Shown here: in pieces, positions 2,620 through 25,919 of the stretch
How the letters are laid out: each line of letters begins with the position of its first letter
Numbering within the stretch: position 1 is the first letter of the stretch
Assembly: GCA_964036045.1 (NCBI GenBank)
Contig: OZ038378.1
Location: forward strand, 199,640,001-199,704,000
Source of the DNA: Eutreptiella sp. 'Long Island Sound 2002'
Lineage: Eukaryota > Protista > Euglenida
Direction: 5' to 3'
DNA: 64,000 bases
The notes under the pieces: generated by a model
Seen by the model: only the letters and a program-made list of their open reading frames with translations
Database searches by the model: none
What the model was told of the DNA's origin: nothing
Made by a program: the position numbers and the translations under genes

Positions 2620-3290
2620 TCTCACTGCCAGTCCCAGTCCGACCCCACATGCACTCCCAGTTGGAGTCTTACACCCACACCTTCGTTGGCTCCCACTGCC
2701 AGTTCCGGTCCAAGTGCAACCCCCTCAGCCACCCCCAGTTGCATGCCTGTGCCCACGCCTTCATGCACTGCCACTGCAGGTTCCAGTCCCATTGCAACCC
2801 CCACATCCACTCCAAGTTGTTCAAGCACTCCCAATGCAATTTCTGCTCCCAGTTACCCCATGCCTACACCTTCATCTACTGCCACCGATAGTTCGAGCCC
2901 CATGTCTATTTGCAGTTGCACGCCGACGCCTACACCTTCAGATACTGCCACACCCGTAACCAATCCCAATGTAAGCCCCACTGCCACCCCCAGCCCCAGT
3001 CCCACATGGGCATTTCAACCCCCTGCCACTCCCAGTTCCAGTCGCAGAACAACTCCCACATCCAATCCCAGTTGCACACCCACACCAACACCTTCAAGCA
3101 CTGCCAGTGCCAGTTCCAGTCCCAGTACGACGCCCACGTCCACTTCTTTGTTCATGCGCTCCCAGTCCAACCCCCACATCCACTCCCAGTTGCACTCGCA
3201 CACAACACCTTCATCCACTGCCACTCCAACAAGCACTCCTAGCTCAAACCCCATGTCCACTCCCAGTTTGCACCCACATCTACGGAACAT
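2620..3290 (+). repeat. Degenerate Thr/Pro/Ser-rich (mucin/extensin-like) coding-type repeat
   Basis: ORF 2401-3315 has recurring TPTPSSTATASSSP motifs; no splice partners were found, so coding status is unproven. Confidence 0.55.
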
Positions 3291-3426
3291 TCAACCAAGG
3301 GGTGCCCACAGCTAGGCTGAATACCTGTCTGGAACCTGCATGCAAGAAACCTTGTGCACTTGCATACCCTGAAATGCATTCAAAAAGATGCAATGTTCAA
3401 ATAAGAAAGAAGAAATGGTCGGCATG

Positions 3427-3885
3427 CTGGTCCCACAGGAGCACCGAGGGTGATAATCTTCAGTGTTTGAAGAGGACTATGCAAACTGGCATTCCATCAG
3501 CAGCAGCAGGCATCCCAAATGGGTGTTGTCCCACTGCACATCATCTGCGTCACACAGTACTGCAATCTGCACTGCAACAAATCACCTTTGGCTCTCCCAG
3601 AAACTCACATTACAACCATATTCAAAGAAACAACAAAAACAGCAAACGTCACCTGCAAAATCATGAATGCTTCAACACATCCAGAGGCTGAATAGGATCA
3701 GAGGAACTTATCACCCCATTGGTCTCCCCTCCAAGCACCAAACAGCCTCCCAAACGGGCCAATGCAATGACATTTGGTGCCACTTTGTTCACATTTACAG
3801 CACATTGTCAGAAATTCCTTGATAGTATTGGTGCATCTGGCATCTGCCAAAATTTGGCACCAGAGTCGTGGAATGTCTTGAAGCC
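3427..3885 (-). pseudogene. Tandem duplicate of the selenoprotein last exon (degenerate) plus 3' UTR/SECIS
   Basis: 3885->3690 reads GFKTFHDSGAKFWQMPDAPILSRNF*QCAVNVNKVAPNV, a paralog of exon 8 with a stop, indels and no AG acceptor; 3427-3620 is nearly identical to 3915-4100. Confidence 0.85.
3480..3571 (-). promoter_or_regulatory. SECIS-like element, distal copy
   Basis: Core 3544->3496 is identical to the proximal SECIS-like core, offset 488 bp. Confidence 0.65.
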
Positions 3886-3967
3886 AAAGAAATTAGGAGG
3901 AAACGGTCTGGATGCTGGTCCCACAGGAGCACCGAGGGTGATAATCTGCAGTGTTTGAAGAGGACTA

Positions 3968-4059
3968 TGCAAACTGGCATTCCATCAGCAGCAGCAGGCA
4001 TCCCAAATGGGTGTTGTCCCACTGCACATCATCTGCGTCACAAGGTACTGCAATCTGCA
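3968..4059 (-). promoter_or_regulatory. SECIS-like element (type II) in the selenoprotein 3' UTR
   Basis: Minus strand: AUGAU-GUGCAGUGGGAC-AA-CACCCAUUUGGGAUG-CCUGCUGCUGC-UGAU. It has the UGAN/NGAN quartet, AA 12 nt above the core, a GCAGUGGG/CCUGCUGC helix, an apical mini-stem and a lower helix UGCAGAUUG/CAGUUUGCA. It lies ~115 nt after the stop codon. Confidence 0.75.
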
Positions 4060-4147
4060 CCACAACAAATCACCTTTGGCACCCACCAGAAACTCACATG
4101 CAAACCGTTTTTCAAACATAGGGAAATGGAAGCCTCAGATATTGTAA

Positions 4148-4410
4148 TTAGGCCTGCAAGATTCCTGACTCCTGCAACACATCTTCAGGCGCTGGGTGAT
4201 CCCCAGGGATCTTATCAGCCCATCCGTAGATAACATTGTCCCCATCCAGCACAAAAGTACCTCCCACACGAGTCACAGCTTCCAGGGTGTTGACTTTTGG
4301 AGCGATTTTGTTCATATTTGAGGCATATGTCCAGAACACATCCCTTGATAGCTTTGGTGCATCTGGCATCTCCCCAAATTTTGCACCAGAATCAAGGAAA
4401 GTCTTGAAAC
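4148..4410 (-). CDS. AhpC/TSA (PRXL2/SelU-like) selenoprotein, exon 8 (last)
   Basis: AG acceptor 4412-4411, phase 1; (G)FKTFLDSGAKFGEMP...TRVGGTFVLDGDNVIYGWADKIPGDHPAPEDVLQESGILQA*; the GGTFV...PGDH motif is typical of the AhpC-TSA_2 C-terminus. Confidence 0.92.
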
Positions 4411-7108: not shown

Positions 7109-7268
7109 CTACAGCCTTGTAAGCATCGAAATTTGCTGAGTCTTCCATAAACATCAATTCTCGTGGGACATCAGGATTGAGGTCCAAGAAAGCGTTTACG
7201 TTCTCAACGGTGCCCACGGAGATGAACATGGGTCCATTGATGTTTGCCTCCCGCAGAGACGGTTGGAC
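7109..7268 (-). CDS. Selenoprotein exon 7
   Basis: AG/GT-bounded, 160 nt; VQPSLREANINGPMFISVGTVENVNAFLDLNPDVPRELMFMEDSANFDAYKAV(G); phases match the neighbouring exons. Confidence 0.92.
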
Positions 7269-8710
7269 CTGCACCAATGTCGATTTTGAGGCGCTTGCAG
7301 GGCGCGGGCAAAATATCTCTCGCCCCCACCGCCCCCCAAGTCTTCTATGAAACTACCCAGGTACAAAGCTGGAAGGTGGCGCACTAGGGGTGGTTGGAAG
7401 GCGATAATGGGGGACTGGTGTACCACCCCAACTCTCCTTGCAAAGACGCTTTATCCCCCCTAACACACAGCCAATCTCTGAAACACACTGCCACATATCT
7501 GGCCCCCTAACACCATCAGGATCAGGGTTAACTCTGGTTGGATTCTTGTGTGTGGAAATACAACGCATGTCCACTGGTGCTCATTGCCTGGTGCCTCCTG
7601 TGCATTTGTCAGAGGATGATGCACTGGGACACATGCAGGGGTCCTCAAGCCTGTGCAGAGGCGGGGACAGCGCAGGGTATGAAAGGGGTTCTAGGTTCCA
7701 AAGGAAATCCAAGCTGCTCCATTGTCTCAGGGGCTTGTTTCACAATGAGAATGGGGCATGGATCACCCAGTGGACATGGAGGGGAAGGGCCACCATGCGC
7801 GTTGAAAAGCACAAACCGGGACCACAGCAGGGCACATCTCTTCTTGACCTGCAAGATGTGCAGCCCTGTCAAAATCCGTGCTCTCCAAACACCTACCTGG
7901 CAAGATACCTAAACAGTTCACAAACTTGTGCACGGGTACTATCTGAATTGGGGCTAGTTACCAAGTCTGCCTTCCTTGTTTGGTTCCTTATGTTGCACTT
8001 GGCTGGTTTGAATGTAGGCTCTTCCCGTTTCCCTTCCTGCCGTGCCACTGCCTCTGTCCGACTGCCGCTCTCCCACCCAAACACCCCAATACGCACGAGA
8101 AGCCCGCGTGGTACACAAATCACAATCACAAAATTTGCGTACCAAATGGGACACGGATGAGCACAACGGAGTCGCTGGGCATGTTCTTGGGGGAATGTTT
8201 GCCCGGCGCGCGGAGACAGCAAATCGACTCTAAGGCTTGTTTCTCCTGTCTCAAAGTAGCGAGCTTGTGAGTTTGTGCAACAATGTTCTCGGAGGAATCG
8301 TCATCGTTCTCCGGTTGAGAGGGCACATTTATGGTATCATCCACTAGGTCCACAAATGAGGCCCTAGTGGACCGAGAAGGCGAAGAAATCGGTTGAGAGG
8401 GCGTTGAATGCGTCCCTACTTCAGGCACAAGGGGGGAACGTTAGCGCGCTGGGCATCTTTTTGGACCCGTGCCCCACCAGTGGCCTTTTAGGGGGTGCAC
8501 TACGGGGGCGCACTTAGCGCAGTGCAGCTATTTGGGCGTCTGGCTGCACTAGGGACCCATACTTTGAGATACTAGGAGCATCATGGTGACCCCTAGCGTA
8601 GGTTTTGACGTCTGATTTTGTCCCCTTTGTTGGGGAACCCCGAGAATGCAGGGGTGACGTACCTCTTTTGGGAACCTTCCGGTGTATTGAGGAAACTGGG
8701 ACAATCTTTG

Positions 8711-9168
8711 AATCCACACTTTATTGCGTGGCCCCTCAAGTTGGGGTTAGGGACTCACAATCCACGCTTTGTTGCGTGGCCCCTCGAGTTGGGGTTAGGG
8801 ACTCACAATCCACGCTTTGTTGCGTGGCCCCTCGAGTTGGGGTTACGGACTCACAATCCACGCTTTGTTGCGTGGCCCCTCGAGTTGGGGTTAGGGACTC
8901 ACAATCCACGCTTTGTTGCGTGGCCCCTCGAGTTGGGGTTAGGGACTCACAATCCACGCTTTGTTGTGTGGCCCCTCAAGTTGGGGTTACGGACTCACAA
9001 TCCACGCTTTGTTGCGTGGCCCCTCGAGTTGGGGTTAGGGGCTCACAATCCACGCTTTGTTGTGTGGCCCCTCAAGTTGGGGTTACGGACTCACAATCCA
9101 CACTTTGTTGCGTGGCCCCTCGAGTTGGGGTTAGGGGCTCACAATCCACGCTTTGTTGCGTGGCCCCC
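8711..9168 (+). repeat. 48-bp minisatellite, ~9.5 copies
   Basis: Unit AATCCACGCTTTGTTGCGTGGCCCCTCGAGTTGGGGTTAGGGACTCAC; contains a CCACGC/GCGTGG hairpin and, in most units, TTAGGG. Confidence 0.95.
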
Positions 9169-9376
9169 CTACAGACCATGGGAGCATGTTCCGCCTCATG
9201 TTTGGACTGACCAAAGCAACTCGGCCGCCACGCAAGATGAGGCAGAGGATGAGGTAGAAGTGTGTGTGTTGTGTTGCCAAAGGCACTCCACCGTGGCAGT
9301 TTGTGATGAGTGTAAGGAGCACTATTGCAATGAATGTATTGACACCCACACTTGTGGGACCAATGTTGTTTGTTAA
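9169..9376 (+). other. Cys/His-rich (B-box-like) zinc-finger coding remnant, probably the tail of a mobile-element ORF
   Basis: CVLCCQRHSTVAVCDECKEHYCNECIDTHTC after an acidic stretch, at the end of ORF 8618-9376. Confidence 0.45.
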
Positions 9377-10619
9377 GTACAATACAAATGACAGTTGGAG
9401 TTGCTGAATTCACAGATATTGCTTTATTATGCGAAGTGCTTTGTAGGGAAGGTGTGTAGTGCAATGTGGTCTACTTGGGGGGCTTCTCCATGAGAGGGTA
9501 AATTTGGGGCTGAAGTCGGGATAGTTAATAGAAAAGTAGCCGCAGTCGCAGCGGCCGAAAAGGCCCGTGATATCGCGGAACTCCCACAGGGGTTATTCGT
9601 ACTTGCTTCGCATGATGTGGTACATCCTCCTCAGCTGGTGCAATGTGCTCACTTGCCTTGGCAACACACCAGGGCAATCCTAGCCCCTTTATGAATGGGG
9701 TAGTCTCAGGTTTAACTCAGCATCCAACCACTCCTCCGTAGCAAGTGGCTGCAACTCAGGTTGGAGGTGGGCAAGGGCTGCCATGATGGCTATTGCCCAT
9801 GCTCCCCCGCACTAGCGGAGGCCCACAGAAGCGGCTTTTTGTTCACTGTTCACACGGATCATCATGCCGAGTAGGGGTGTGGCACCCGTAGGGGCAGCCC
9901 GAGGGAAATACTCCACCGCCACCTTCGGGTATTGCAGCCAGTCTTTGTGCTGCCCCCCCCTTTCAGTGCACCTCGAAGAAAGCCTTGCTAGTAGGGCCCT
10001 TGGTAATGGGTAGAACCTTCCCACAAGGGCACTGCCACTTCTTAGCGGCTATGTTCCGTTCCCGCCACCCAGCATCAGCATAGTAGGAGACACGGGGGGG
10101 GGGGGGGGTAGCCATAGGGGTTGTGGAGAATGCAAAACTCATAGTGAGGTGACTTGAAAACTGACAAACACAGAGAATTAGGAAATTGTTTCATGGTGCC
10201 CAAAACACCAACAAGCAAGTTGTGTCAAGCACATATGACCCGACCAAACAGACCATCCACACCAAACCACCAACACCCGGAGCTACTTGGGGGTGGGTTG
10301 TTGGTAACCCATTGCGTAACGATGACCCCCATGCCCAACCCCCCATGCCCAACCCTAATAGAGGTAGGACAACTGGGCCACCCGCAGTGGGGCTAGGTGC
10401 AAGCAAACAGTCCACACACCTTTTCAACTTTTTCAACCAAGACTCTTGTCTTTTTTGGACCACAACACTTGCCCCCCCCCCCCCCCCCCCCGCCTACCAG
10501 GTGAAATTTTGCTTGTTGCGGGAGAATTTTTCGCAACCCCCCCCCCCCCCCGGTGGGACCTTAGACAACCACCTACACCTCTTGTGAGGTGCACCCGGCC
10601 GCTACCTAGGGGGAGGGTG

Positions 10620-10950
10620 GGGGGGGGGGGGATGACACCTGATTGTGTTGTTGTCTGCACCTGGCGTTGCATCTTGGCCTCTCGCCACTTCCCCACTTCC
10701 CACCGCCCTTCCCTTGAACCCTTTCCCTCCCGAGGTAGCAGTGCCTGTCGACCTCTCACCACCTTGTGTCCTCCCTCGACCTACCTAGTCTATCCTGACC
10801 TCCCTATGTACCCTTCCTTGCCCTTGGCAGATTGTACCAATGAAGCCCTTGTACTTTCCTTGTTTCAATGCTCTGTGTCGGGTTCACACAAAGAGGGCAA
10901 CTACCCTTGCCATAGGCTAGGTGCGTCCCGGTGGACACCCCATACAGGCA
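10620..10950 (-). repeat. Diverged short copy of the retroelement 3'-terminal repeat
   Basis: Colinear similarity to 11450-11830 and 51597-51850 (GATGACACCTG...TGTCTGCA, CTCTCACCACC, TTGTACCAATGAAGCCC, TGTTTCA). Confidence 0.7.
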
Positions 10951-11445
10951 GTGGGGGATCCCATGCAACATTGGTCTTTGAAATACATTGACCTAGACAA
11001 TCATGCTCTTCTGAATGGTACTTTTGAAAATCACCGGAACCAGTTGTCCCGTGTACCCCACCCCCCTTGTCCTAATAGGGGTAGGGTTCTAGTTCAAGGG
11101 AGGGGGGGGGGGGGGGCAGGTGGCAGAAGCAGAGTGTTGCCGTGTTTGGACAAGCCCATGTTGCCGCACGGCAAGTACCACAGAACACATATTGCAGCCA
11201 ACGCTACCCCTGTACAACTACAAAAAGGTGTCCGACAGGCCACCATACACCCTAGAACACATGAGCACACGGAATTACAGTTACACCCACGCTGCGCACC
11301 CATATTGACCCTTCCTGCATGCTGCACAAAGCTACCAACCACATTTTCTATTGGATTGGAGCCTCAAAATCGATGTTTCCAAAAAAATGCGAAAACACGG
11401 GGTCACTGTGTTTGGAAAAGCCCATGTTAGGACAGGGGGGGGGGG

Positions 11446-14400
11446 TTTTGGCATGACGCCATGGTGTGATGATCTCGTCTGCAGCTGGCGGCGCCTACTG
11501 GCCGATCGCCATTTGCTGCCCTTCCCTTGGACCCTTTCCCTCCATAGGCGGTGGTGCCCATCAGCTTCTCACCACCCTTTGACCTTCCTCTTCCTCCTTG
11601 CCCTAACCTTCCCTCTCCCCTCCCCTTTCCCTTCCCTTGGCCTTTCCCTCTGTAGGCCACGGTGCCCATCGGCCTCACCACACTCCTTCCCTTCCCTTTC
11701 CCTTGGTCGGTTGTGCCAACGGAGCCCCCGGACTTGCCCTGTTTCACTTCTCTGCGTCGAGTCCACGCAGAGGAAGGCAAATGCCTTCGCCGTTGGCCAG
11801 GTGCGTCCAAGCGGCCATCCCAAGCCGGCGGTGAGGTACCTCTCCCCAACGGCGGCTGGTGGGCCCTGGGATGGCCACTTGCAGGGTCGTTTCCCCGACG
11901 GGGGCACATAACAACCTTTCTCCTCCAAGTTCCCGCGCTCAGTCCATCCTTTGGCGAGCGCAACACAAACCCCCTACCCTCTCCTTCATGCCTTTGCTGC
12001 GCGGACGGGGGTTGTGGGGGATGCGTGGGTGCACGGGGGAGTAGGATGTAGCGGGTGACGTGGGGTGGGCCTCTTACCGTCGCTGGCCGCCCACTTCGTT
12101 GCGCGACTCCCCGGACCACCTCAACATAGGAGCGAGTTGTTGTTGGGTTGACGGTGGTGTCCCGTGTTGGATGGAGGTGCGTAGGGCCCCTTGCTGGCCC
12201 CCTTCTCCCGGCTTGGTCCGGGCGCTTGACGACGTGGTGCGTCCCTTTTCTGGTTGAGTTGCTACGCGAGGGAAGGAGTCTCTCCCCTGCTCGCTTCTCA
12301 GTGCCAGCACGCTGGGACTTACTGCCGTGGTCACTCCCTTGAGAGCGCGGCCCCCGGTGGGCTTGCGTTGCCACATCGGGCATCTCGCTGAGGCCCCATT
12401 GGACCCCCCGAGAAGAACTCGGTGCACGTGTAGACTTCATTGTTTTGTTTTGGTCGGTGTTGGTCACCACCCTGGCTAAAAAAGTGCGGGGGTTGCCTTC
12501 CCCCTGCCTGTTGTTTGGCCTTGCCCCCTACTCCGCCGGCGAGAAAGCTCGCTGCGCGTTGTGGTAGCCGGGGCGCATCCAATGGAGACTGCGGCGCCGT
12601 CTCCATTGGGCATGGGTCCAGAGGCCCGTCCACGGCCGTACCTCAGACCACATCGTTGTGCCTTGTTGCTGTATCACTGGGGGCCGCGGCTCCCCAGTGT
12701 GAGTCTCGGTGGCTGGAGGATCTTCTCCTCCCCAGCAGAGCCATGTTGATGGTGTGAGACTCTCCTTTCCATCAGGCTTTTTGCTTTCATTGTTCTTCCT
12801 TCTCCTCCCGGCGCCGGGTTGCCCGTCCCTTGGGTTCCTGGGTCGCTTGGCGCCCGGTCTCAGTCCCTCTTGCTTCAAGGCCTAGGCCATGCCATGGTGC
12901 GTTCCGGGTCGCGCCTTTGTGCTCGGCACTGCGCTGAACAAGTTGCACCCCGTCACCTTGACGCCGTCGGAACTGTGCGACCGTGCGCTTCCACGCCCTC
13001 TTGTCACCCGCGGGTGGGGCTTGTCCGCTTCTCACTTCGGTTCCATCTTCTACTCCTTGTACAGCCGGATGCCTACTTGCTCGGCAATCACGTTTGCCCT
13101 GTGCAAGTTTTGCATCAACCTGGTTGTGTCCTCCACTGTGAAGTTGATGCCCTCCCCGATGATGAACACCTCCGGCTCCCAACGTCTCACCTCCGGCACC
13201 CATACCGTTGAGGCTAGCACTCGCACTTTGTACACCTGGTCTGGTGCCAATAAGTACATGTTGCTTCCTGCCTCGGGGTAGTCGGAGAACCACCCTCTCC
13301 TCCTTTTCTCCGCGAGGATCCGGTCCGCTTGGATGGCGCGGACGTGGTGCGTGTGCCACCGGAACTTCTCATGGAACAAGAGGCGGCGGGTCCGTTGCGT
13401 TCCCGACCCCGGTGGCGGTGCGCCCTTGGGTGTACCCTCACCGTGGCTAGCCCCCATTCCACTCGCATGTTCGGAACGACCGGGCCTTTTGCTTCCCCAC
13501 AAGAAAGACCAAAAACCCTCTCCATCGCCCTCCGTTTCTGGGTTTTTGGCACTTGGTGGCGCTTCCTCCGGGGCTGTTTGCCCCGCCGAACTTGAGCTGT
13601 TGCAGAAATTGGATCGAAAGTATGTGGGGTTGAACTGGTAGTTGGGTGGTTCCTCCGCCGGCCTTGGCGGTGTCACCCCGGGCGCACTTTTCCATCCCTC
13701 GTAGCCGGAGGTCAACCTTTTGAACAGGTGGGTGGCTTTGGCAATGTTGTTCATGTTCTTGTCCGGATGTAACCGCAACACCCACTTTTTGTATGCGGCC
13801 TTCACTTCATCCATGGTGGGTGCACTACCCACTCCAATCTGTTCAAGAAAGCTCCATCCTTCAAAACCCGGGGGCAGCACCTCAACGGGCTCAACTACCT
13901 CCGGGACCACCTTCTTCTTGTCCACTTTTACTCGGCGCATCCCTCCCACTAACAACACTTGCACTTTGTCCTTGTAGATCTCCTCCAACACCCCCTTGTG
14001 GCCCTCCAACTCCGGTTGTCTCATCCCTACTAGCCTCACCCCATTCCATAGTTCAAATGTTTCTTCCTGCCCTCCCATCTCTCCTTCTTCACTCCTTTCC
14101 TCCTTTCTTCCGTGCGGTTCATTGTCTCCCGCCACCCCGCGTCCTTTTGTTTCTTCCCCGTGCTGTTGTTGTTGGGCAGCTTTTGAGTCCTCGGCGCCTC
14201 CCATGTGCTCCACCTCTTGCACCCTGACCCTATCCAATGACACCAAAACCCTTCTGCCACAGTCCATTCGGAGTCTTACTTTTCCTTGTTCCTCGATGAT
14301 GCTTTCAACCTCACCTGTCTTCCCCTCCAGTTCCATCTTTTTCTTCATGCCTGTTAGTGCTACTCTTCCCCCGAGAACAATGCGATGGCCATCCACTCCA

Positions 14401-17400
14401 ACCACTTCCGGTCTCTCGGAGTCACTTTGCTGTGGTTCGGCCCGTGCTTGTGGCTTGGGGGGTTGTTCCTCCAGCGCCACCCCTGCCTTCCTCGCTTTGC
14501 TGCGTTGTTCTCTCCTCCTCTGCTTGTGCCTCTCTCTTTCCTCCCGCAACCATTTGGCTGGCCTTGCCTTTCTGCACCTACACTGGAACACCCTGTTGCT
14601 GCGGAACACCTTCTTCGCCTGGGAGACAGTGACCCCAGCACACTTCAAGTGCATCCAGTGCCCCTGGCTGCACCTCACTGCTCCCTCCTTGGCCCTCAAC
14701 GGTCTGCAGCATAGCCCACATGCGTGCTTGGGACCACGCTTTTGCGTCCAAGCTTCGGGTCCAACCGTGCTCGCTGTCCCGTTGCTGCTCGTGCTGCTAT
14801 CACTCTCCTCATTGTTGTCGGGCTTGGTGTTCTCCTTTTCCTTAGGTGTGCTTCCTGCTCCCAACCATTTGGTCCACCACCTGTTGTTTCCCATGTCCAT
14901 ACAACCACCATCCTCGGCCTCCACGAGGACCACCGGCACTTCCTCCTGCTCCCTCCAAACCGGGTGAGGGTCATCATCATCCCAAACTCCAGCAAGATGT
15001 TCGTGATACCGGTGATCCACTCCCGGTTTCTTTCGGCGGATTGCGGCACATCTGTTTGCCACCTCCATGCCCAAGACGGACATTGTGTAGGCCTTTAGAC
15101 CCCCCTTCAGTGGGGCACACGCCACTTCATCCGCTGGAGAGGTCCAACTTTGCACCACTCCAACTGCTGGGCCTCCTTCCGGTATAATTGACCATAGCGT
15201 TTGGCCAATTGTGTTGAGGGTGCACACGTCCAAGGCTGATAGCACCGGCACATGTCCTGGATGCGTGTGTATCCAACCAACCAATTTTCCTCCCAAGGAT
15301 GCGCCCCAACTGACCGCCTCTGTGAGCGCCTCATCTCCCACTGCACAGTGGTGGCTTGTTTGTACGTCGTGTCTTGGTATGTGTAGACCCCCTACTTTGA
15401 CCCCATTTTCGGTCCTTGTCCCCCACAACAATCCCATGGTCTCTTTCCCTTGGCTTGCCGCTTCCCGGACTGCTTGGTTCCATGTCTCCAATATGTCCTT
15501 GGGGAGCTCCACTTGCCATTCACCCTTTCTTGGTTGTGGCTTTGTTCGTCTTGATTTCGCCTCCTCCGAGGTCACCTTCTCTTCTGTCGGCCCCCTCTCT
15601 TCGGCTTCCTTCAACCCGTGGTTTCCCACTCCTGTTGGGTGTTGTACCTTGCTGCGGTCCTTGTTCTTTGTCGCTTTTGGACGTGGTTGTTCGTCCAACA
15701 CCCCCTTCTCCACCCCATCCACTGCCACTTCTCGAGATGGTTCTGGCTCTCCCTGGCCGGGGGCATTTCTTCTCTCCTCCTGCCTTGGTTGTTTCTTTGT
15801 CTCTTCTTCTTCCACCACGTCTAGCTCTGGGTTCTCCTGGCTTTGGCCTCCCGCTTCCTCTTTCCTCAGCCCTTGCAACCATCTCAAGATTGATATGTCA
15901 CTGTTGGTGTCACTATCTTCTCCATGTCCTCCGCTTTCTTCACCTTGCTGCTCATCCTCTTGCCGCTGTGGTGGATATTGTTCCTTGTGGCTTTGGATTT
16001 CGCTCTTCTCCTTTTGCTTGTGGTCTTCTTCCTTCTCCTCCTTCTCCCCCACCTCTAGCCCCACTTGTGGTGATGGACGAGGCCCTCCATGGTCTTCGGT
16101 GTGGCTCTTCCTCTGTTGCCTTTGTTGCTCCACGGTCGCCTCATCGTCCACCACCTCCGGCCGCAAGTCCTTGTGTCCCTCCATTTGCCCTCCTTCGCCC
16201 CTTATCTTCAAGCCTTGCAGCCATGTCAAGATTGATACGTCACTGTCGGTGTCACCGTCTTCCACTTCTTTTGTTCCTTTGTCGTCTTGGCTCTCCCTCT
16301 CCTGCCGCTTCGCTTGTTCTTCCTTTTGTTGTCTCTCAACATCATTTGTCAGGCTTTTGTTGGTGCTTGCAGCCTCCGTGGTCTCGGCGCACCCAACTTT
16401 GCGGTTGTCGCTTTGCGTTGGCGCCACCAACGGTGGTTCCCTCAAGTCCACAACCACCACCGTCTCCCGCCACACACCACAGTTCTTCATCTCCTCTTCC
16501 TCTCCGACGATCTCAGTTGTTCTCACCCCTTGTGGGTGCGGATTTTTGGCTTCCCTCCTTTGGGGTTCCAGCCCGCCTTCCGGCGGTGTCCACACTTTCG
16601 GTGGCGGTGGTACGTGCTCAAACGGGCAGCTCTTTCTCCGACACCTCCACCCGTACCAACATCTCTTCTTTCTCCTCTCTTCTTTTGAGATCTCCTTCCT
16701 TACCCACCGTTGCATCCGTCCAAACCACACGTGCATCTCCCCCATGGTGATGTCTTGTCCACCCCACCACACTCGCAAGAACTTGCCCCATTGTTTCTTT
16801 TGCTCGTGTGTCCCATAGCCTCGCTGTGTGGCCGTTTTGGTGATGGTTTGGATCGCCTCCTTGAATAATCGCAAAACTGAGCACAACCTCAATGCTCTGA
16901 TGTATTGCCCTGTCAATACTCCCAACCTTTGGGCGTCCAAGATCATGCTATCCCTCACTGGATATCGCCTTATTTTTATGGGATAGTCCTTCTCTCTCCA
17001 ATGCACTCCGGTTTCAAACTTGGTGCGCCCTTTCTCATCCTCTCTCCACCACAAGTCAGCCCCCAAGAAGACAAGGTGGCCTCCATCAGCGGCTCTTCGG
17101 ACCGTCCTTTTGAGTTTGTATGCTTCCTCCCCAGGGACGACGCCGGTCAAGGAAAACATGTCATCCACAAAGCGATAGTTGTGTTCCACTTGCTCCGGCC
17201 TCCTTCCTTCTTCTTCCGCGAACCTCTTCTCCGTCCCATAACACGCCAAGTTCGCCAAGAAGACGGCACATTTCAGTCCCATTCCGAAACCTTTCTTTTG
17301 CTTGTACACCACACCCCCTTGCTTGACATATCCGTTGTTTAGTACCCACTGCACCATCTCCTTCACTTCTCTCTTGCTCCAGCTGTCAGCTTGGGGTTCC

Positions 17401-18360
17401 TCCCCCTTTCGTCCAAGCCACCAACCGTCTTTTCCGACCCGTAGCTCTTCCTCCTCTTCCCCATCCTTGTCCTCCTTTGCAGTTTGTTATTCCCAGTCCC
17501 AAGCCTCCTCGATTGCCTCCAACACGTTTGTGGAGACGTAGTCTTGATCCATGCTTGGGTACATCGCCACGAAATCTCCCACTTCCGCCGAAGCTTTACA
17601 TTGCGCTATCAATTCCTCCTCAAATCGGACCGGCTGCGTGAACTCCTCCACACTATCTATCCACCACACCCTCTTCGGGTTCCCTTTCTTCCTCCATTCC
17701 ACATCCTTGCGTTTCAAGCTTCTGCATACTTGCGTTAATGCTTGCACCAAGACCTCTCCGACTCCTGCTATGCTTGCTTCCGGCTTGTCTTTCTCTTCTT
17801 CGGTTTGTTTCCTTGCTCCACTAATCCATCGTATGTTTTCTTTCTGGGCCTTCCATATTCCATATATGTACGGCAACCTTCTGTTGACTGCGAGGAGCCT
17901 CTCCGCGTGGTAGTCTTCGTGGCGTTGTAGGATGGCCTCCTCACTTTCCGGCGCGACCTCAAACCCATCACTTTGGAGGTATATGTCCCTCCGGTGCTTG
18001 TATAGTCGCTTACATCCGCCAACCCAGTTGTGCGGACCCCTATCCTCCTTCAAGAATGCAAAATCTTTCTTCATGTCCTTCACTTTTTGCATCCCTTCCG
18101 TCCCTTGTGGCAACGTGTGAACCTCCTTGTCCACTTGCCACATCACTTTTTTCTTGATCAAGTCTTTCCACCCTTCGTAGTCCTCTCTTTGCCCTGCTCC
18201 ACTTCGTACTTTGCACTCGATGTACTCCGTTAACCCCTCTTCCAAGTTGTGGAGCACCTTCCATTCTGGCTCTTGCTGCTTGAATTTGTATCCTTTTTTG
18301 TCCACGTCTTCCATTATTGGACTATTGAAGCCCGCCATCTCTGTCACGACTGTCATGACA
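11446..18360 (-). mobile_element. Penelope-like retroelement (Naiad/Chlamys-type RT), apparently 5'-truncated, in intron 6 of the selenoprotein gene
   Basis: RT motifs KGYKFK, DFAFLKEDRGPHNWVGGCKRLY, LPYIYGIWK, GDFVAMYPSM, YKQKKGFGMG, YRFVDD and GVLTGQYIRA; bounded by G11 (11435-11445) and G15 (18361-18375). Confidence 0.85.
13050..18356 (-). pseudogene. PLE polyprotein: RT + CCCH + JAMM/MPN + PHD + 2x KOW/SH3-like + DnaJ + unknown domain; one in-frame TAA at 17487-17489
   Basis: ORFs 17487-18443 and 13050-17366 are in the same frame and separated only by a TAA plus 40 open codons; domain motifs read directly from the translation. Confidence 0.85.
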
Positions 18361-19574
18361 GGGGGGGGGGGGGGGAGCAAGTCCTCTCTAATACTAGGCA
18401 GATGGCCACCAGGACTAGCAGACGAATGGTGAACCCTTTCCAATAATCCAATGAGCGGGATAAGGTGGCACTCCTCTTTCCATGGGTTTGCACATAAACC
18501 ACGTCACGTTACCTTCTCGACCGCAAAAGCTGTGGTCGGAAGAACAATAATATGCGGTCAACTTGTGGAGAAAAGGCCGGGCTTGCGCTGACACGCTCAG
18601 GGGAGGGGAGGGGTAAAGAGCCCCAGATACAATATGAGCCCTCCCAAGGCCCCACCACACGATTGTGGAATGATGATGGTGACTGTTCAGCTCGCAGCCC
18701 CTCAGATGACCGGTTGAGACCACCGGCTGTGATTGCCATCCCATGCTGTCATCCATCCCCAGATGTCTACCCGACACATCAGATGAGCTCCCACCCCAGC
18801 CAATGACAACCACTACCATTCTACCCCACGTGGCCCACATTTCATGATCTTTTTTTCAAAAGCATCCATACTTTCCGATACCTTTCCGTTTTTCACAGAT
18901 ATGCCACAGATGGTGTTGCATTCTTTGACACAACAGCTTTGTTTTTCTGGAAGCAGGAGCCTACACACTCACCCAAATAGGGGATGCAGAAACCCATGGG
19001 CCCCACATCGCTGCCACTCCCTGAATAACCTCACGCACAACATTTTGATTCCCACGGGCATGAGGATGCCAAAGATGCAGAGGATGCACGTGCACCATTT
19101 GCACTGTGTCAAGGAGAAGGATGCTGAGGGTATTGTAAGACATGGCACAACAGACCAGCTGGGCATCGAGGCATAGGCAGGACGGCCCTGAAGGATTAAT
19201 ACAAGTTGATTTCTGCCCTGCCCAACAAATGCACAAACCCAAAAAACAAGAGGCACTACACACGGCAAATTTTCAAATCATCCAGTGATACATCCATTTT
19301 GTCACCAGCAACGACAAGACATATGAACCTCCGACCGCAGTAGGCAGTTTATGGACCAAAAATTGGCCATTAGCCACCGGCAGGTTGTGGTCAACCACCG
19401 GCGGGCAGTGATTCACCGCTGGCCCAGAGCGCGGTCATGAAGGGGCGGTCCTTCGTGGAAAAAAAAAACCTAATTTGTTTCTAAAAGGACCACCCTCGGG
19501 GCATAGGGTCAGAATGAAACGCGTGAATCCTGGGTTGCCCCGGCCTGCCCTGCACCTTGCCGACTCAGGCACAC

Positions 19575-19664
19575 CTTGAGCCACTGGGCCACAAGGTCCC
19601 AACAGTAAACTCAGCCTAAATGGCGCAAGAACACGACCACGCTCTTGCCTGAGTCCCCAATGAC
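19575..19664 (-). CDS. Selenoprotein exon 6 containing the Sec codon (UxxC)
   Basis: CAG|GTC...AAG|GTGTGC, 90 nt; VIGDSGKSVVVFLRHLG-TGA-VYCWDLVAQWLK; TGA at 19613-19611 sits at the first redox-Cys position. Confidence 0.92.
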
Positions 19665-20959
19665 CTGCAGCAGAACACACAATCGACGTCCGGGTTGCAT
19701 GGAGCTTTTCAAGCATTTTTGGCGCGCAGCCTGTACCTTCGGTCAGCACATGACGCATGAGAAAGCACCGTTTCTAAGAGGTGGTGGTAGGAGAGGTCCA
19801 GCCCTTCTGTACCAACCCAAAAAAAAGAAATTGAGTTACCCACCCGGCGGAGGTGCCGACACAACAAAAGGCGCTCTACCGGGGAACAGCACTTCAGCAC
19901 AAAAGTGTCCACCTCCTGCAAGGTGATGCTACCACGCCAGCTGAGTCATTCATCACGGAGACACGAAACTGAAAGTCGGCAGCAGCGTTTACGTCCATGA
20001 TGGCAGGCTGGCTCGCTGTGTGGAGGTTGAGATTACAGTGGCTGGCTCTGTGGAGGTTGGGGGCTGCGGTGGCTGGCTGTGGGGAGGGTTGCAGTGGCTG
20101 GCTGTGTTGAAGCCTTGGCTGGAGTGGTGGGCTGTGTGGAGGTTAAAGCGTTGGTGCTACTGGTACTGATATTGCTGCTGGTACTGGCACCTTTTCTTTT
20201 TGGAAAAGAAAAATGAAAGCTTAGTCAATGTTTTCTTAGTCTGCTCCCACGTTGTGTGCTGTCCATTCTTTGACTGGTCCTGCTGCGTGTTCATGGTACC
20301 CGCATCGCACGCATCAACAATCGTCAGCTGGCATTGCAAACAAACAATGAAATTGGCAGAACAATGAGGTCTGAGCACAGGGGAAGAGGATTCCAAAACC
20401 TGTGGCTCGAAGACTCACCCACCTTAGAAAGGATTGTTGGGTGCAGTTGGGTGCCAGCATGGAACCCAGTCCGAGTCACGACGCGCAAAGATGTTTCCGT
20501 TTTCTCCGGGAACAAATTTGGGTGGAATCAGCTTGGTCAGAAACGTGGGGGGGAGATGGGTTTGAAATTATGACTCAAACACACTGCCTTGTTCATCAAT
20601 ATTGGCCAGTGTTTCTGAAGTTTCTCAGTGAGGAGGAGGACGAGGGCTTTTGTTCGTTGGCAGGGGGGGGGGGGCTTTCCCCATACATGAGGTATGATCG
20701 CAGTGGGAACAGAGGACCAACAGGAGGTATCCGCAGTTCGAAAAACTTGGTTCTATGGCAGTATGAGCTCAGCCCAAAGAACACAAAAGAAAATGCATTG
20801 TTCACATTGAAGTACCAATGTCTGCCACCCACCATGCACTTGACGCTGCTGCTGTCATTGCTGGAAAACCTGACTGGGCACACCAGCTTGGTGACCCAAA
20901 TCCACATATATGCACACAAAAGGCTGCTCCCACCCTAGACCCCTGCAGAGAGTTGTAAC

Positions 20960-21072
20960 CTGTGCAACCGTCTTACGCTGCCCATCAGCATCAGTCAATT
21001 GCAGCGACCGCAGGAGCCTGGCATCCACGTCCTGCTCATTGATGGTCACAGTACTGCCTTCACAACCACAAT
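20960..21072 (-). CDS. Selenoprotein exon 5
   Basis: AG/GT-bounded, 113 nt; (D)CGCEGSTVTINEQDVDARLLRSLQLTDADGQRKTVAQ. Confidence 0.88.
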
Positions 21073-21397
21073 CTTAAACAGAAGCGTGGGAGACAAGCAA
21101 CAGGAATGGCCTTTGGGGAGGTCGGGAGTGGCTTGAGATGCAATGGGTCCATGTTTGCAGCTGCAGAAGAGCACAGTGCATTGCATTGTGTGGGGCTGGT
21201 GAACAACCTGTCTGCAGTCACGCTTCTCACAGGTAAATCTGCTGAATTTAGGCAAATGAGAGCCATGACGCCATGTTTGTGTGGAACTGCTCGCCCACAC
21301 CCACCCACACCCCCACACCCCAAAAAAGGGGTACCCGGGTACGGGGGGCTAAAGGGGTCAAAAACGAAAAATTCATTGGGGGATCATTTTCTCTCCT

Positions 21398-21516
21398 AAA
21401 ATGATGATTTTACAAGGGGTTGGACATCCGGTACCATACCTTGGGGTATCGTACGCGAATGACCCCAAAAAAGGGGGGGTATATGGCGTACGCACCTACG
21501 CTTGATCTAACAACCC
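21398..21516 (+). repeat. Dispersed repeat module AAAATGATGATTTTACAAGGGG...TTGATCTAACAACC
   Basis: Related copies at ~27228-27350, 29606-29740, 36367-36500 and 46685-46815. Confidence 0.85.
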
Positions 21517-22326
21517 TCTGTTAGGTTATTTGTGCATTTTGATGTGGTGAATTCAAAAATGCAAGAGTTTAGCCTCAACAAGACGATATGTTGGAGAATC
21601 GGCCAATTTGTGTCAAAACAGTCACATTTTCCCCTCCGACTAAACTGGCTGTGATCAGTGTGGTCGTGGACATCAGGGCAGTAAATGGGGAAATTCTCTA
21701 GCATATTGTCTTGTTGAGCCGAAACTCTTGCATTTTTGAATTCAGCACATCAAGATGCACAAAATTTATACACCCCCTTTTTTTCGTCATTGGAACAACC
21801 TGTGGAAGCACCGGTCCGACCACCTTGAAAACCTTGCATGCAGTGTAGACCAAGGTTTACAAGCAGATGCCGAAACGCCCAAGTTCAGCGGCCCGGGGCG
21901 GAAAAATATGGTCACGTACCCCCCCATGACCCATACCTTTCCGAAACGGCCTTTTCTTGGAGATTTCAAAAAATTATAAAACACCCCCCCCCCTTCCAGA
22001 ACGATATTTTTGAGAAAAACGGCGAGAACTGAAAAAACTCCGACTTTGCATCGGAATCACCCCCCCCAGCAAAACGCCCATATATATACATATATATTAT
22101 ATTTTACGTACATATATTTTGTTAACACTCGCATGACACTTCACCGGGCTTAGAGGGCCCCCTCCCCGGGGTTGCAATGGACCACCAGCCCTGATCCACC
22201 GTGGAGGAGCTCAAGGTCCATTAGATTCTGATCCATCGATGGTTGGGCAAATGGGTGCGTCTCTGCGGACAAAATGGTCATGACTGCACATGCCTTCGCA
22301 GCCCAAAGCACTCAGGCAAAGCACAC

Positions 22327-22398
22327 CCTCAACGCTGCCTGTCGTTGCTGCCATTGCAATCTTGTGGTCAGCGATTGCCACATCATTGAGGTGCAGAC
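22327..22398 (-). CDS. Selenoprotein exon 4 (end of presequence)
   Basis: AG/GT-bounded, 72 nt, phase 1/1; (G)LHLNDVAIADHKIAMAATTGSVE. Confidence 0.8.
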
Positions 22399-22531
22399 CT
22401 GAAAGGCATGCAGCAATGGAGGCAGTTGCAGCCGAGCCCCAGGACCGCAACCCTTCGCGAATACTTTTGGTGATCACAATGGTAAAAATGCAGTGCAGGA
22501 TTTTTTTTGGAGGGGGGGGGGGTCTGTTGTC

Positions 22532-22759
22532 AGGGGTGTATTGGAAGGGGAGGGGAGCCAGAATGTCAGCATGTCAGGAGCAGTTACAAAGGCAGCTGGA
22601 GGGTAGTGGCAGGGCCTCCTTTGGAAGCAGTTACTGTGGGCCGCAAAAGCTGTTATGATTGGGCTGTTGGGAAAGTGAGAGACCGGGTGGGCTGCTGGAT
22701 CAGCCCACACAAAGGGGGTGGGGTGGGATACCTCTCGCCCTCCCTGGATTGCACTCCCT
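22532..22759 (+). mobile_element. Degenerate MITE-like element (same family as 40215-40426)
   Basis: Begins AGGGGTGTATTGGAAGGGG; interior is colinear with the 40215 copy. Confidence 0.55.
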
Positions 22760-24293
22760 CTCCAACCAGAACTATCCCAGTCACTATGATGTGTTACCTC
22801 CACCCAAATGCGCATTGCACTTGAACATGCAACTCCCAGCTGTCTGTAACGGGAGGTGCACTTGAGTGGCTTCAGTTAATGAGGGGGCCCTTGTTTAACG
22901 CGCTATTTTTATGCCAAATATCCCGAGTTTAGCACCAGCACCCTCCCCGAGGCAAACCACCCAAGCAGACCAGAATCAAAACCAAACCCTTCCCTTTAGA
23001 GCACACAACATAAGACCAAATTTGTGAATTCCACTTGCTCAACACATATGACATGTATTGCGCCTAATAAACAGCTTTGTCCTCCCAAGTGTGGGTGGCA
23101 ATACGCTCAGCACAAGATTTTTTTGGTTCAGACCCGGGTAAGCTGGCAAAGCCCTTTTGAGGGAACGTTTGCCTGGCACGCCCACCACGCCGAGCATCCA
23201 AATCAATGTTCTGGCCGTCTATCCCAATGCTTTACCCCCATCATATGGAGCTTGGAGTGCCCTTTTCACAATTGCACAAGCACAATTCATTCATGCATGG
23301 TTGCAAGAAGTGGTGGCAAGGAAGTATGATGACAATATTAACCTCTCTTGGAATCATTCCTTGCTCTCTTGGGCACTAAAAGAAGTGCCCAAATCCCATT
23401 GCGCCAGGCTGGGTCAGGAAATCCCATACAAAAACATGCCCTCCAACGGTTGGAAGTGGAACAGTGACCATTGAAACTTTCTCCAGCACACCCGTTGCAT
23501 GCCCGCCATGCTAACGTTCCCTCCTTAGCAGGCGGTACGCGAGAGAATTTTCCGAATAAGGGATCACAGCTTTCCGTGCTACGATTGTCCTAAAGCTCAG
23601 TGTGGTAGCGGACATGACACGTAGTTAGGATGAGCTCAGCACAAAACTGGTATTGCAATCACCACAAAGTGTTGTGGTGCGCTTTTTGGCAGCACACGGC
23701 AAAAATGTCAACCTCATCCCCTCGGAGGGCGGTATTTCTATTATTTCTGGCCATTTTGGCCGCTTTCGGAGGGCGGTATTTTAGTTATTTTTGGCCATTT
23801 TGGCCGTTTTCGGAGGTCATCTTGCGGGGCAGCTGAGTTGCTTGCAATGTCTTCCCACGGGGGGTGACAGACCAAAAAATGGGACTGCAACTGAAATGGC
23901 TACATAACCCCTGCCTTCTCGGGATCTCCAACATGAAGAGGAATAAAGCACCAGAAGGTTGAACGAACGCAATCAAAAGTGGCTCCATAACCCCTGCCTT
24001 CTCAGAGTCCCCGAAGCAGCAAGGAATCACACCGGTTGCTTATTATAATATTGGTTGGGGGCATTTCAGCCTAAAACGACACCGGCACGCGTCCAGTGTA
24101 CTAACCCCCCCCCCCCCCCCCGTTGCGCAGGCACCGCCCAAGGCACCAACATTGAAGGTTTCACAGCATAGTGGTGACTGCACAAGGCGGTGCTTGCGCA
24201 AGGGGAAGCAGGGGCTCACATTCCCTCTGTATCACATCTCCCATGCAGAGCACTGAGATCCTTATCTCACATTGACCCCATAACTTCGCATAC

Positions 24294-24387
24294 CGTCCCA
24301 AACTGAAGGCTGACTGCGTTTCTGCATGATTTTCATAATGAAGGCAGCCACAGGCAGCAGGATGACCAGACTCTTCAACCAGATGCC
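24294..24387 (-). CDS. Selenoprotein exon 3 (second TM / stop-transfer segment)
   Basis: TAG|GGC...GAC G|GTATGC, 94 nt; GIWLKSLVILLPVAAFIMKIMQKRSQPSVWD; hydrophobic helix followed by basic residues. Confidence 0.82.
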
Positions 24388-24693
24388 CTAAGAGATAAAT
24401 CATGTGCAGCAAAGAGGGCACACTAGCAATCCAAAAAATCTGGGGAACAGTGTAGGAACGGTGTACATTTTCTGACATGTCTGTGATGGATACCAGGGTT
24501 GCGAGGAACTATGCAGGAACCTGCATGCTTGGGGGCTCAGTGCAGTGTCGGTGCAAAACTTTCGGGCAACAGTGCAGGAACAGTGCAACGCAAGGGGAGG
24601 AACGGTGCTATTCTGCCTGCTGCAGGAGAAGCAAGCACGACCAACAGACAAGCGAAGCCCAGTCACAACCTTCACACACTGCTGAAAGCAGAC

Positions 24694-24849
24694 CTGAAAA
24701 GCTGCGGCGGCGGTTTCAGTGGCCCCAGGAGCTGCATGCTGGGCTGTGATGCCCCTGGGAACGGAACGCACACCAACGACTGGTCTCCTTGTTTGCATTC
24801 CACCATCCTGCGTGCCTCTGGCCATCGCTCCAACTGCTGGCAGAGGAAT
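24694..24849 (-). CDS. Selenoprotein exon 2 (transit-peptide-like)
   Basis: AG/GT-bounded, 156 nt; IPLPAVGAMARGTQDGGMQTRRPVVGVRSVPRGITAQHAAPGATETAAAAFQ. Confidence 0.8.
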
Positions 24850-25144
24850 CTGTTGAATACAGCAGCAATAGTCAACGGTCCCCATTTGCAAAAAGGGCGC
24901 AAGACGCAGGCACCCCGAAACGAAACGAACGAAACATTCCATTCACAATGCGCCTCAACACCGCATCACTGCACCACACCTCGTCCCACAGAGCATCCAT
25001 GTGGGTGTACACAGCCAAGGTCCAAGGCTGACAATACACTCTACTCCTCATTTTTCCCCCAGCCCTGTCTAACCCACCCATTCAGTGACCGCGAATCCCC
25101 TCGACCCTGGAGGGAGACGAAGCAGTGGAAGGAGAGGGGGATAC

Positions 25145-25315
25145 CTGGGTTGTTGCTCTTGGCGCCACCATCAAATTGGTCTCATTTGAAGCGTTGGGGA
25201 TCAAAAAAAACGCAACCCCCAGGCCAACAACACCAATGAGACAACCTGAGAGCCACGCCTCAACTCCAGGTGTTTGTGCATGGGTGGAGGCTAATAAAGG
25301 CCTCCTTTCAATCAT
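25145..25315 (-). CDS. Selenoprotein exon 1 (signal peptide / first TM); whole CDS is 1119 nt, 372 aa
   Basis: MIERRPLLASTHAQTPGVEAWLSGCLIGVVGLGVAFFLIPNASNETNLMVAPRATTQ|GTATCC; candidate trans-splice acceptor CTTTACCCTCAG ~17 nt upstream of the ATG. Confidence 0.8.
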
Positions 25316-25919
25316 GATATGATTTGCACGTCTGAGGGTAAAGACCACAACACAGCAACATGCAAAGATGGTAAATAAATTGCTTTGCTTCATTGCAAAT
25401 GTGCAGACACAACCACCCTGCTGCCTCATGACTTATTGTATTGTCATGGTTTTTCATGATCCTGTACATACTACCCCCCCCTCGAGGTTTTGGGCTCTTG
25501 ATGAATGCCAAGCCCCTTTCCCCCGCCTTTGTCCTCCCCTCCCTCACCAGGGAAGAGGGTCCACGCCAAGTGACGCCCCCAGCCCGCCCTCCAGGGAGCC
25601 GCACTACCACTGTACACGCACATTGTGTGGCACAGAAATTGCAGCAGAAAACGAAATAACAAAGCACAAGAAACATTGGTGTGCAGAGATTATCAAGGTG
25701 AAAACACAATGACAGGTGAAAGCTGGTGTGCCAACCATAAGAAAGGCATGCGTGCGTTCAATGAGCTGCCAACGTCATGAAACTTACTCCTTGAGCGGCT
25801 CGAGATAAAATTCTATTGCCTATCGGCAAGGCGCCTCCAAGAGGGAGGGAGTGCAGTCAGTCAATCACCCACCCCCGTCCAAACACCCAAATAGGGGGAA
25901 AAAACCAAAGAAAGAGGGT

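Follow-up and report, generated by a model that had tools for sequence, protein, structure and literature searches.

The DNA analyzed here, a 64-kb stretch of a euglenophyte genome (hereafter, the window), carries an expressed nuclear gene for a PRXL2-like oxidoreductase which contains an in-frame UGA codon. Comparison with homologs indicates that this UGA very probably encodes selenocysteine (Sec). The source is a marine or estuarine euglenid, probably of the Eutreptiella type and related to E. gymnastica. With high confidence, we read the locus as an eight-exon gene encoding a plastid-type presequence followed by a PRXL2/AhpC-TSA_2 domain, in which the UGA at codon 220 would be decoded as Sec via a SECIS element in the 3′ untranslated region (UTR). 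The exons, spliced leader, UGA, and SECIS-like element described below make this a fully documented gene model for a predicted selenoprotein in a euglenophyte genome.

Architecture and expression of the gene

The gene consists of eight exons spread over about 22 kb of the minus strand. A JGI metatranscriptome record of 1773 nt (L001) aligns with the window in eight blocks at 100% identity, retaining the TGA, and all seven introns resolved in this way have GT..AG borders. The open reading frame starts with an ATG (L001 nt 29; window position 25315) and proceeds through 219 codons, the TGA, and another 152 codons to a TAA at 4150-4148; with the TGA read as U, the predicted product has 219 + 1 + 152 = 372 residues, the U being residue 220. 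This model matches exactly the 372-aa, eight-exon protein proposed in the initial annotation, which was made from the sequence alone.

Exon 1 (25145..25332; L001 nt 12-199 at 100%), with the trans-splice acceptor AG at 25334-25333, contains the 5′ UTR and the ATG (25315-25313), and the first of two hydrophobic presequence segments is encoded here. The presequence continues through exon 2 (24694..24849), which is delimited by GT..AG junctions in L001 and recovered in three RNA sequencing runs, all of which contain the joints 24849/25145 and 24386/24693, and through exon 3 (24294..24387), which encodes the second hydrophobic segment. Exon 3, exon 4 (22327..22398), exon 5 (20960..21072), where the mature domain starts with a DCGCE motif followed by LLRSLQLTDADGQRKTVAQ, and the TGA-bearing exon 6 (19575..19664) are all supported by both L001 and the contigs of the RNA runs. 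Exon 6 is separated from exon 7 (7109..7268; VQPSLREANINGPMFISVGTVEN...YKAVG) by an intron of 12.3 kb (7269..19574), as defined by the exon 6/exon 7 junction of L001, and a loose end of the RNA contigs also reads into exon 7. The coding part of exon 8 (4148..4410, including the TAA) is covered by L001 and matched by the Pfam AhpC-TSA_2 model in the piece downstream of the UGA, whereas the 3′ UTR extends over 3522..4147 up to the end of L001, nucleotides 882-1773 of which correspond to window positions 4413-3522 at 100% identity. The two distal coding exons are also apparent as stop-free segments of the minus strand far downstream, at 7268-7109 (...NGPMFISVGTVEN...YKAVG) and at 4410-4151 (FKTFLDSG...GGTFVLDGDNVIYGWADKIPGDHPAPEDVLQESGILQA, then a stop). 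Visual inspection of 19575-18360 for further exons yielded nothing convincing, exon 7 being located 12 kb away, beyond a retroelement.

Exon 6 itself is a 90-nt exon (19664-19575, minus strand) with AG/GT borders and phase 0 at both ends, which translates as VIGDSGKSVVVFLRHLG*VYCWDLVAQWLK, that is, VIGDSGKSVVVFLRHLG-TGA-VYCWDLVAQWLK. It follows ctgcAG with GTC ATT GGG, reads CAT TTA GGC TGA GTT TAC TGT TGG around the TGA (19613-19611, minus strand), and ends with CTC AAG in front of GTgtgc, the motif at the TGA being RHLG-U-VYCW. The clean borders and the in-phase splicing to both neighbors had been anticipated and are borne out by the genomic sequence and by L001.

The first 11 nucleotides of L001 (ATTTTTTTTTC) are non-genomic and joined at the AG acceptor; together with the genomic G at 25333, they read ...TTTTTTTTTCG, which we take to be the tail of the euglenid spliced leader (Euglena SL RNA). 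The same start is found on the transcripts L002, L006, and L013, and in the RNA runs the loose end at 25332, GAAAAAAAAT, likewise corresponds to the spliced leader.

The transcripts were reached through a word-indexed search with the last exon, which returned only three matches, including P0002 (146 aa, 100% identical) and P0003 (61% identical), encoded on RNA-derived contigs. One of the transcripts, L002, is a 1420-nt contig from the Logan assembly of SRR21130499. Sequencing runs provide further support. Over 19400-19800, RNA runs contain an exon-sized fraction (0.17) of the sampled words, and DNA runs contain all of them. Four runs were aligned on 19400-25350: the genomic run X1, in which coverage is about 46x and includes the introns, and the RNA runs X5 and X7, from one study, and X8, an estuary metatranscriptome. 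Each of the three RNA runs yielded one contig of 1258-1281 nt, spanning exons 1-6, without a single other letter and with five CT..AC joints (GT..AG on the minus strand) at the predicted positions; beyond the exon-6 donor, a loose end at 19573 reads on into exon 7. It should be noted that L001 may have been assembled from the data of X5 and X7. All seven junctions of the eight-exon model are found in L001, and the five that connect exons 1-6 are found in three RNA runs as well.

Several repeats reside in the introns. Intron 6 contains a retroelement with a reverse-transcriptase-like ORF (16500-18503, minus strand) in the same orientation as the gene, and splicing across this intron is clean in all RNA contigs. 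Furthermore, two intronic segments, 21191-21588 and 23778-23976, reach a k-mer depth of up to about 68,000 in the genomic run, compared to about 46 in their flanks, and thus represent very high-copy repeats; short RNA contigs also touch 21455-21519.

The Kyte-Doolittle profile of the predicted protein has two peaks, at residues about 21-39 and 111-129, separated by a spacer rich in Ser, Thr, Ala, and Pro. This layout with two hydrophobic segments is shared with the orthologs from E. gracilis and in L006 and corresponds to that of the class I plastid-targeting presequences of euglenids; a plastid location is predicted for the window protein. The 372-aa precursor would then comprise a bipartite presequence of roughly 140-165 aa and a thioredoxin-fold domain of about 210 aa.

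Standard annotation procedures lose this gene, as had been suspected when truncation or splitting of the gene by automated annotation was predicted. The genome call P0001 (4151-4540, minus strand) is a 130-aa ORF that begins in intron 7 and covers exon 8 only; the gene calls on L001 are split at the UGA into 228 aa and 146 aa; and the public homolog P0240, a peptide of Eutreptiella gymnastica from MMETSP0809, runs out of frame over some 70 residues surrounding the UGA. The N-terminus of L013 is the same as that of P0240, and the P0240 prediction steps around the UGA.

The UGA codon and its counterparts in homologs

A profile built from the 152 post-UGA residues of L001 and L002 was compared, using HMMER, with 1.84 billion cluster representatives, yielding 181 clusters at E<=1e-3. 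About 25 of these are full-length, and all of them contain the motif FLRHL[GA]-C-[PTS]-[YWF]-C-W, with the Y-C-W of the query directly after the first Cys; EG_transcript_15704 of Euglena gracilis and a protein of E. mutabilis are among these Cys forms. More than 100 other clusters are ORFs of 100-170 aa that begin 0-30 residues after the motif, as would be expected if gene callers had stopped at an in-frame TGA. Indeed, all six contigs with such truncated ORFs that were retrieved (L003, L004, L005, L007, L009, and L011) have an in-frame TGA at the position of the first Cys, reading RH[LFA][GA]-TGA-[PV][YF]CW, with conserved sequence upstream. The corresponding sequence is RHLA-TGA-VYCW in L002 and RHLA-TGA-PFCW in L013, a transcript of the E. 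gymnastica type. TGA is present at the homologous position in nine of the nine other transcripts for which the DNA was read, three of which are euglenid. Conversely, in 20 of the 20 Cys-form sequences aligned, the residue opposite U220 is the first Cys of CxxC, in agreement with the initial proposal that the UGA takes the first Cys position of CxxC in a thioredoxin fold of the AhpC-TSA_2/PRXL2 type and that Cys-containing homologs would align there; the Pfam match and the structural model considered below concur. In L007 and L009, the ORF also terminates with TGA, such that UGA occurs both inside the CxxC motif and as the stop codon of the same mRNA; TGA is therefore not a reassigned sense codon in these transcripts but has a dual meaning.

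Three database homologs have Trp at the Sec/Cys position, namely P0032 (RHLGWPYCW), P0094 (RHMGWPYCW), and P0175 (RHLAWAFCW), which may represent either translation with a UGA=Trp table or a true TGG codon.

In a maximum-likelihood tree of 27 domain sequences, the euglenid proteins form a clade with 100/98 support, which comprises the Sec-type pair of the window gene and L002, the Sec-type L005, and a sub-clade of Cys-bearing Euglena proteins; in the rest of the family the Sec and Cys states are interspersed, implying at least 3-5 changes. The tree is unrooted, and the change in Euglena was presumably from Sec to Cys. The Euglena orthologs (EG_transcript_15704/7889 of E. gracilis and the E. 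mutabilis protein), which belong to the same euglenid clade as the window gene, are 375-376 aa long and, like the window protein, contain the two-segment presequence and the DCGC motif; the identity to the window protein is 44-46% over the domain, and the Euglena proteins read LACPYCW (Cys) where the window protein has LGUVYCW (Sec). Thus, a single clade contains a clean natural Sec/Cys pair, with putative Sec in the window gene and in three Eutreptiella-like transcripts of marine type, and Cys in Euglena. This split fits the known trend for selenoproteomes to be larger in marine organisms than in freshwater or terrestrial ones.

SECIS-like elements and proposed decoding of the UGA

A SECIS-like hairpin downstream of the stop codon was part of the initial annotation, and a candidate element is present there. 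Element A (3983..4032, minus strand) starts 116 nt after the stop codon and is bounded by AUGA at 4032-4029 and GAU at 3986-3984, reading AUGA-UGU-GCAGUGGG-ACAACA-CCC-AUUU-GGG-AU-GCCUGCUGC-UGCU-GAU. Its predicted inner fold (-17.7 kcal/mol) consists of a helix II of 10-12 bp, an A-rich 5′ internal loop (ACAACA), a 3-bp mini-stem, and a tetraloop, and the spacing AUGA-N13-AA fits the usual descriptor and is form-2-like. The homologous element of L002 reads AUGA-CGC-GUAGUGGG-CACA, followed by a 5-bp stem and ...CUAC-AGCU-GAU. In a joint fold of L001 and L002 with RNAalifold, the two elements share 15 pairs, 3 of which show compensatory double changes in helix II (for example, GCAG/CUGC vs GUAG/CUAC). 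L007 also contains an element of this kind, AUGA...UAAA...GAU, with a helix II of 10 bp. When the UTRs were shuffled with preservation of dinucleotides, a candidate equally good by our own simple descriptor appeared in none of the 200 shuffles for L001 and in 2 of the 200 for L002.

With the eukaryotic form-2 SECIS, the element thus shares the 5′ AUGA core, the 3′ GA(U) core, a helix II of about 10-12 bp, unpaired A residues about 13 nt past the core on the 5′ side, and a mini-stem above. It differs in the lack of an Rfam score, in a large internal loop below the core, in an uncertain helix I (pairing of, for example, UGCAGAUUG with CAGUUUGCA would yield one, but the lower stems differ among the constrained folds of copy A, copy B, and the L002 element), in the L002 ortholog having CACA where the canonical unpaired AA is expected, and in the presence of two tandem copies in the 3′ region of the window. 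Specifically, the Rfam SECIS models gave no match on the whole window at the gathering threshold, and at E<=10, no SECIS family was reported on 2000-27000, on L001 and L002, or on five other UGA-bearing homolog transcripts. Given that Rfam is also blank on UGA-bearing homologs, this negative result says little, and we attribute it to the models being insensitive to protist elements of this kind, rather than to a lack of SECIS.

The lack of Rfam hits is one of two observations that suit a readthrough of the UGA without selenium, whereby Cys, Trp, or Arg would be inserted by a near-cognate tRNA and the 3′ UTR hairpin would be irrelevant; the other is the Trp at this position in P0032, P0094, and P0175, although these entries may be calls made with a UGA=Trp table. 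We consider such readthrough improbable. An active-site CxxC in which UGA and Cys alternate is the classical hallmark of Sec, the structured AUGA...GA element is conserved and covaries between species, and the internal and terminal UGA codons of L007 and L009 require a signal in cis to be discriminated. The idea that the UGA is a true terminator has even more to contend with. In that case, only a product of about 219 aa, comprising the presequence and a fragment of the fold, would be made, or else the gene would be a decaying pseudogene. UGA is a normal stop codon, and gene callers treat it as such, but in-frame conservation extends over the 152 codons that follow: between L001 and L002, amino-acid identity in the post-UGA region is 68%, with pN of 0.215 and pS of 0.726, that is, a pN/pS of about 0.3 (dN/dS about 0.1 after correction), and these values indicate that the region is translated and subject to purifying selection. 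Moreover, the TGA is conserved in all nine other transcripts read, its position aligns with the catalytic Cys of full-length homologs, and the mRNA is abundant and fully spliced, so that termination at this codon appears hardly credible. Equally slight is the chance that the mRNA is corrected prior to translation, through editing of the UGA to UGU or UGC or through skipping of exon 6, because L001 and the X5, X7, and X8 contigs retain exon 6 and carry TGA, with no exon-6-skipping joint or base change at the TGA seen in the latter (RNA contigs drop rare variants, such that a minor skipped or edited isoform could be hidden), and because loss of the 90-nt exon would delete a strand and the active-site motif. 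The UGA is thus retained in the mature mRNA, contrary to the outcome that the initial annotation had named as fatal to the Sec assignment.

Under the favored reading, the codon-220 UGA would be decoded as Sec under the direction of the SECIS 116 nt past the stop codon, placing Sec at the N-terminal, attacking position of the U-x-x-C motif at the start of helix alpha-1. The selenolate would attack the substrate, a peroxide or a disulfide; Cys223 would then resolve the selenenic acid or mixed intermediate so formed to a selenenylsulfide, and the latter would be reduced by a thioredoxin-like or glutathione-like reductant, presumably in the plastid. The 64-kb window contains no tRNA detectable by ARAGORN, and hence no tRNA-Sec, and none of the genes for the Sec machinery (EFSec, SBP2, PSTK, SepSecS, SPS2). 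Such machinery is present in kinetoplastids, which also belong to Euglenozoa (PMC1557815).

The 3′ region also contains a second SECIS-like element, element B (3496..3544, minus strand), which is identical in sequence to element A and lies in a tandem duplicate of exon 8 and the 3′ UTR (3400-3885 vs 3886-4410, both on the minus strand). The coding part of the duplicate is only about 70% identical and includes frame-breaking indels, whereas about 190 nt around the element are about 97% identical between the copies. L001 extends from copy A across the decayed exon and enters copy B, with its 3′ end falling within the second element. The identity of the two copies could reflect either selection on the second SECIS or recent gene conversion. 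Words from 3250-3470 are present in the DNA runs X1-X3 and in X15 (kind unstated) but absent from the exon-6-bearing RNA runs X5-X11, which suggests that the mRNA ends before about 3470.

Fold, family, and relation to known selenoproteins

The piece of the window protein downstream of the UGA matches Pfam AhpC-TSA_2 (PF13911) marginally, with 29.5 bits against a cutoff of 27; the corresponding piece of L002 scores 36.4 bits. For structure prediction, residues 160-375 of the E. gracilis Cys ortholog, which comprise its domain, were modeled with AF2 from an alignment of 18 sequences in place of the window protein, and the model has a pLDDT of 89.7 and a pTM of 0.88. The CxxC motif corresponds to C57/C60 of the model, with the first Cys located between a strand (46-51) and a helix (58-69), the classical active-site position of the thioredoxin fold. 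In a Foldseek search of the Swiss-Prot models with the E. gracilis ortholog, PRXL2C ranked first (TM 0.70, 22-24% identity), followed by chloroplastic AAED1 of Arabidopsis, PRXL2B (prostamide/PGF synthase), and PRXL2A (16-19% identity). The best PDB match by both sequence profile and fold is human PRXL2B (9us9, E 1e-5, and 9usa), where LRRFGCVVCR is aligned opposite FLRHLGCPYCW, and ESM Atlas features likewise point to PRXL2C-like clusters. A profile search with the whole domain retrieved the same clade again, followed by a sharp drop in score to generic bacterial peroxiredoxins; the named matches are annotated as 'hypothetical protein' or 'AhpC/TSA antioxidant enzyme', and the organisms represented are diatoms (Nitzschia, Attheya), an ochromonad, Pyramimonas, Euglena, and Eutreptiella. 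None of the matches of the profile searches bears the name PRXL2 or SelU, the library of 1.84 billion representatives carrying no names.

Taken together, sequence profiles and modeling place the protein in the PRXL2/AhpC-TSA_2 ('SelU-like') superfamily, in a clade of its own that appears to be structurally nearest to PRXL2C/AAED1. The assignment to the SelU family in the initial annotation therefore stands at the superfamily level but does not extend to SelU1/PRXL2A: orthology with the classical SelU1 is not supported, with PRXL2A ranking below PRXL2C and PRXL2B at an identity of only 16-19%, and with the profile searches returning one separate clade. Another candidate label, 'SelL-related redox protein' of NCBIfam, remained below threshold, with 45-54 bits compared to a cutoff of 120.

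The SelU/PRXL2 family (SelU1 = PRXL2A, SelU2 = PRXL2C/AAED1, SelU3 = PRXL2B) shares with the window clade the Pfam domain PF13911, the thioredoxin-like fold, and U/CxxC at the start of helix alpha-1, and in this family, too, Sec and Cys forms alternate between lineages, Sec forms being common in marine algae (PMC7539508, PMC2375036, PMC3473315). In contrast, the identity between the window clade, as represented by the E. gracilis ortholog in the Foldseek search, and PRXL2A/B/C is only 16-24%; the clade, consisting of about 180 clusters, is characterized by FLRHL[GA](U/C)x[YWF]CW and a conserved C-terminal GGTFV...PGDHP block; and its euglenid members have a presequence of about 150 aa. AAED1 of Arabidopsis (Q9ZUU2; fourth in the Foldseek search of SwissProt) is similarly a plastid protein of the PRXL2C type with CxxC, but it is a Cys protein with a simple transit peptide and 23% identity, from a land plant, which lacks the Sec machinery.

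In fish, birds, and unicellular eukaryotes, SelU is established as a selenoprotein, with Cys forms occurring elsewhere (PMC2375036), and each of its three subfamilies contains Sec in some animals (PMC3473315). Among algae, SELENOU and Sec-containing SelU-like proteins rank with the most widespread selenoproteins in a 137-species selenoproteome survey (PMC7539508); neither the main text nor the examined part of the supplement of this survey mentions euglenids, and the motif strings of the present clade are absent from the same part of the supplement. A literature search for selenoproteins of Euglena or Eutreptiella returned no paper describing any. We entertain, tentatively and with more doubt than conviction, the notion that the FLRHL[GA]-U-x-[YF]-C-W proteins form a distinct, mostly Sec-containing, PRXL2C-like clade, distributed broadly among marine protists (euglenids, diatoms, ochromonads, prasinophytes) and possibly uncatalogued as a selenoprotein family of its own, the euglenid member of which would be a plastid-imported selenoenzyme with a tandem SECIS pair kept identical while the co-duplicated exon decays. 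Members of the clade may already be filed as SELENOU in algal catalogues. The more sober view, that the gene is a fairly ordinary euglenid addition to a known class of algal selenoproteins, is well supported. As such, its value lies in annotation and in comparisons of Sec with Cys forms, and it leaves the understanding of Sec decoding and of PRXL2 enzymes unchanged; plastid targeting, as predicted, and the SECIS duplication are side issues that can be tested.

One further feature of the mature domain deserves mention. The domain opens, at the start of exon 5, with a CxC motif (EDCGCE; 21062-21070, minus strand), about 55 residues before the Sec position. All euglenid orthologs retain this CxC, as does L007 (ECECN), and many other family members have a single Cys there; it may constitute a second redox site or a metal site.
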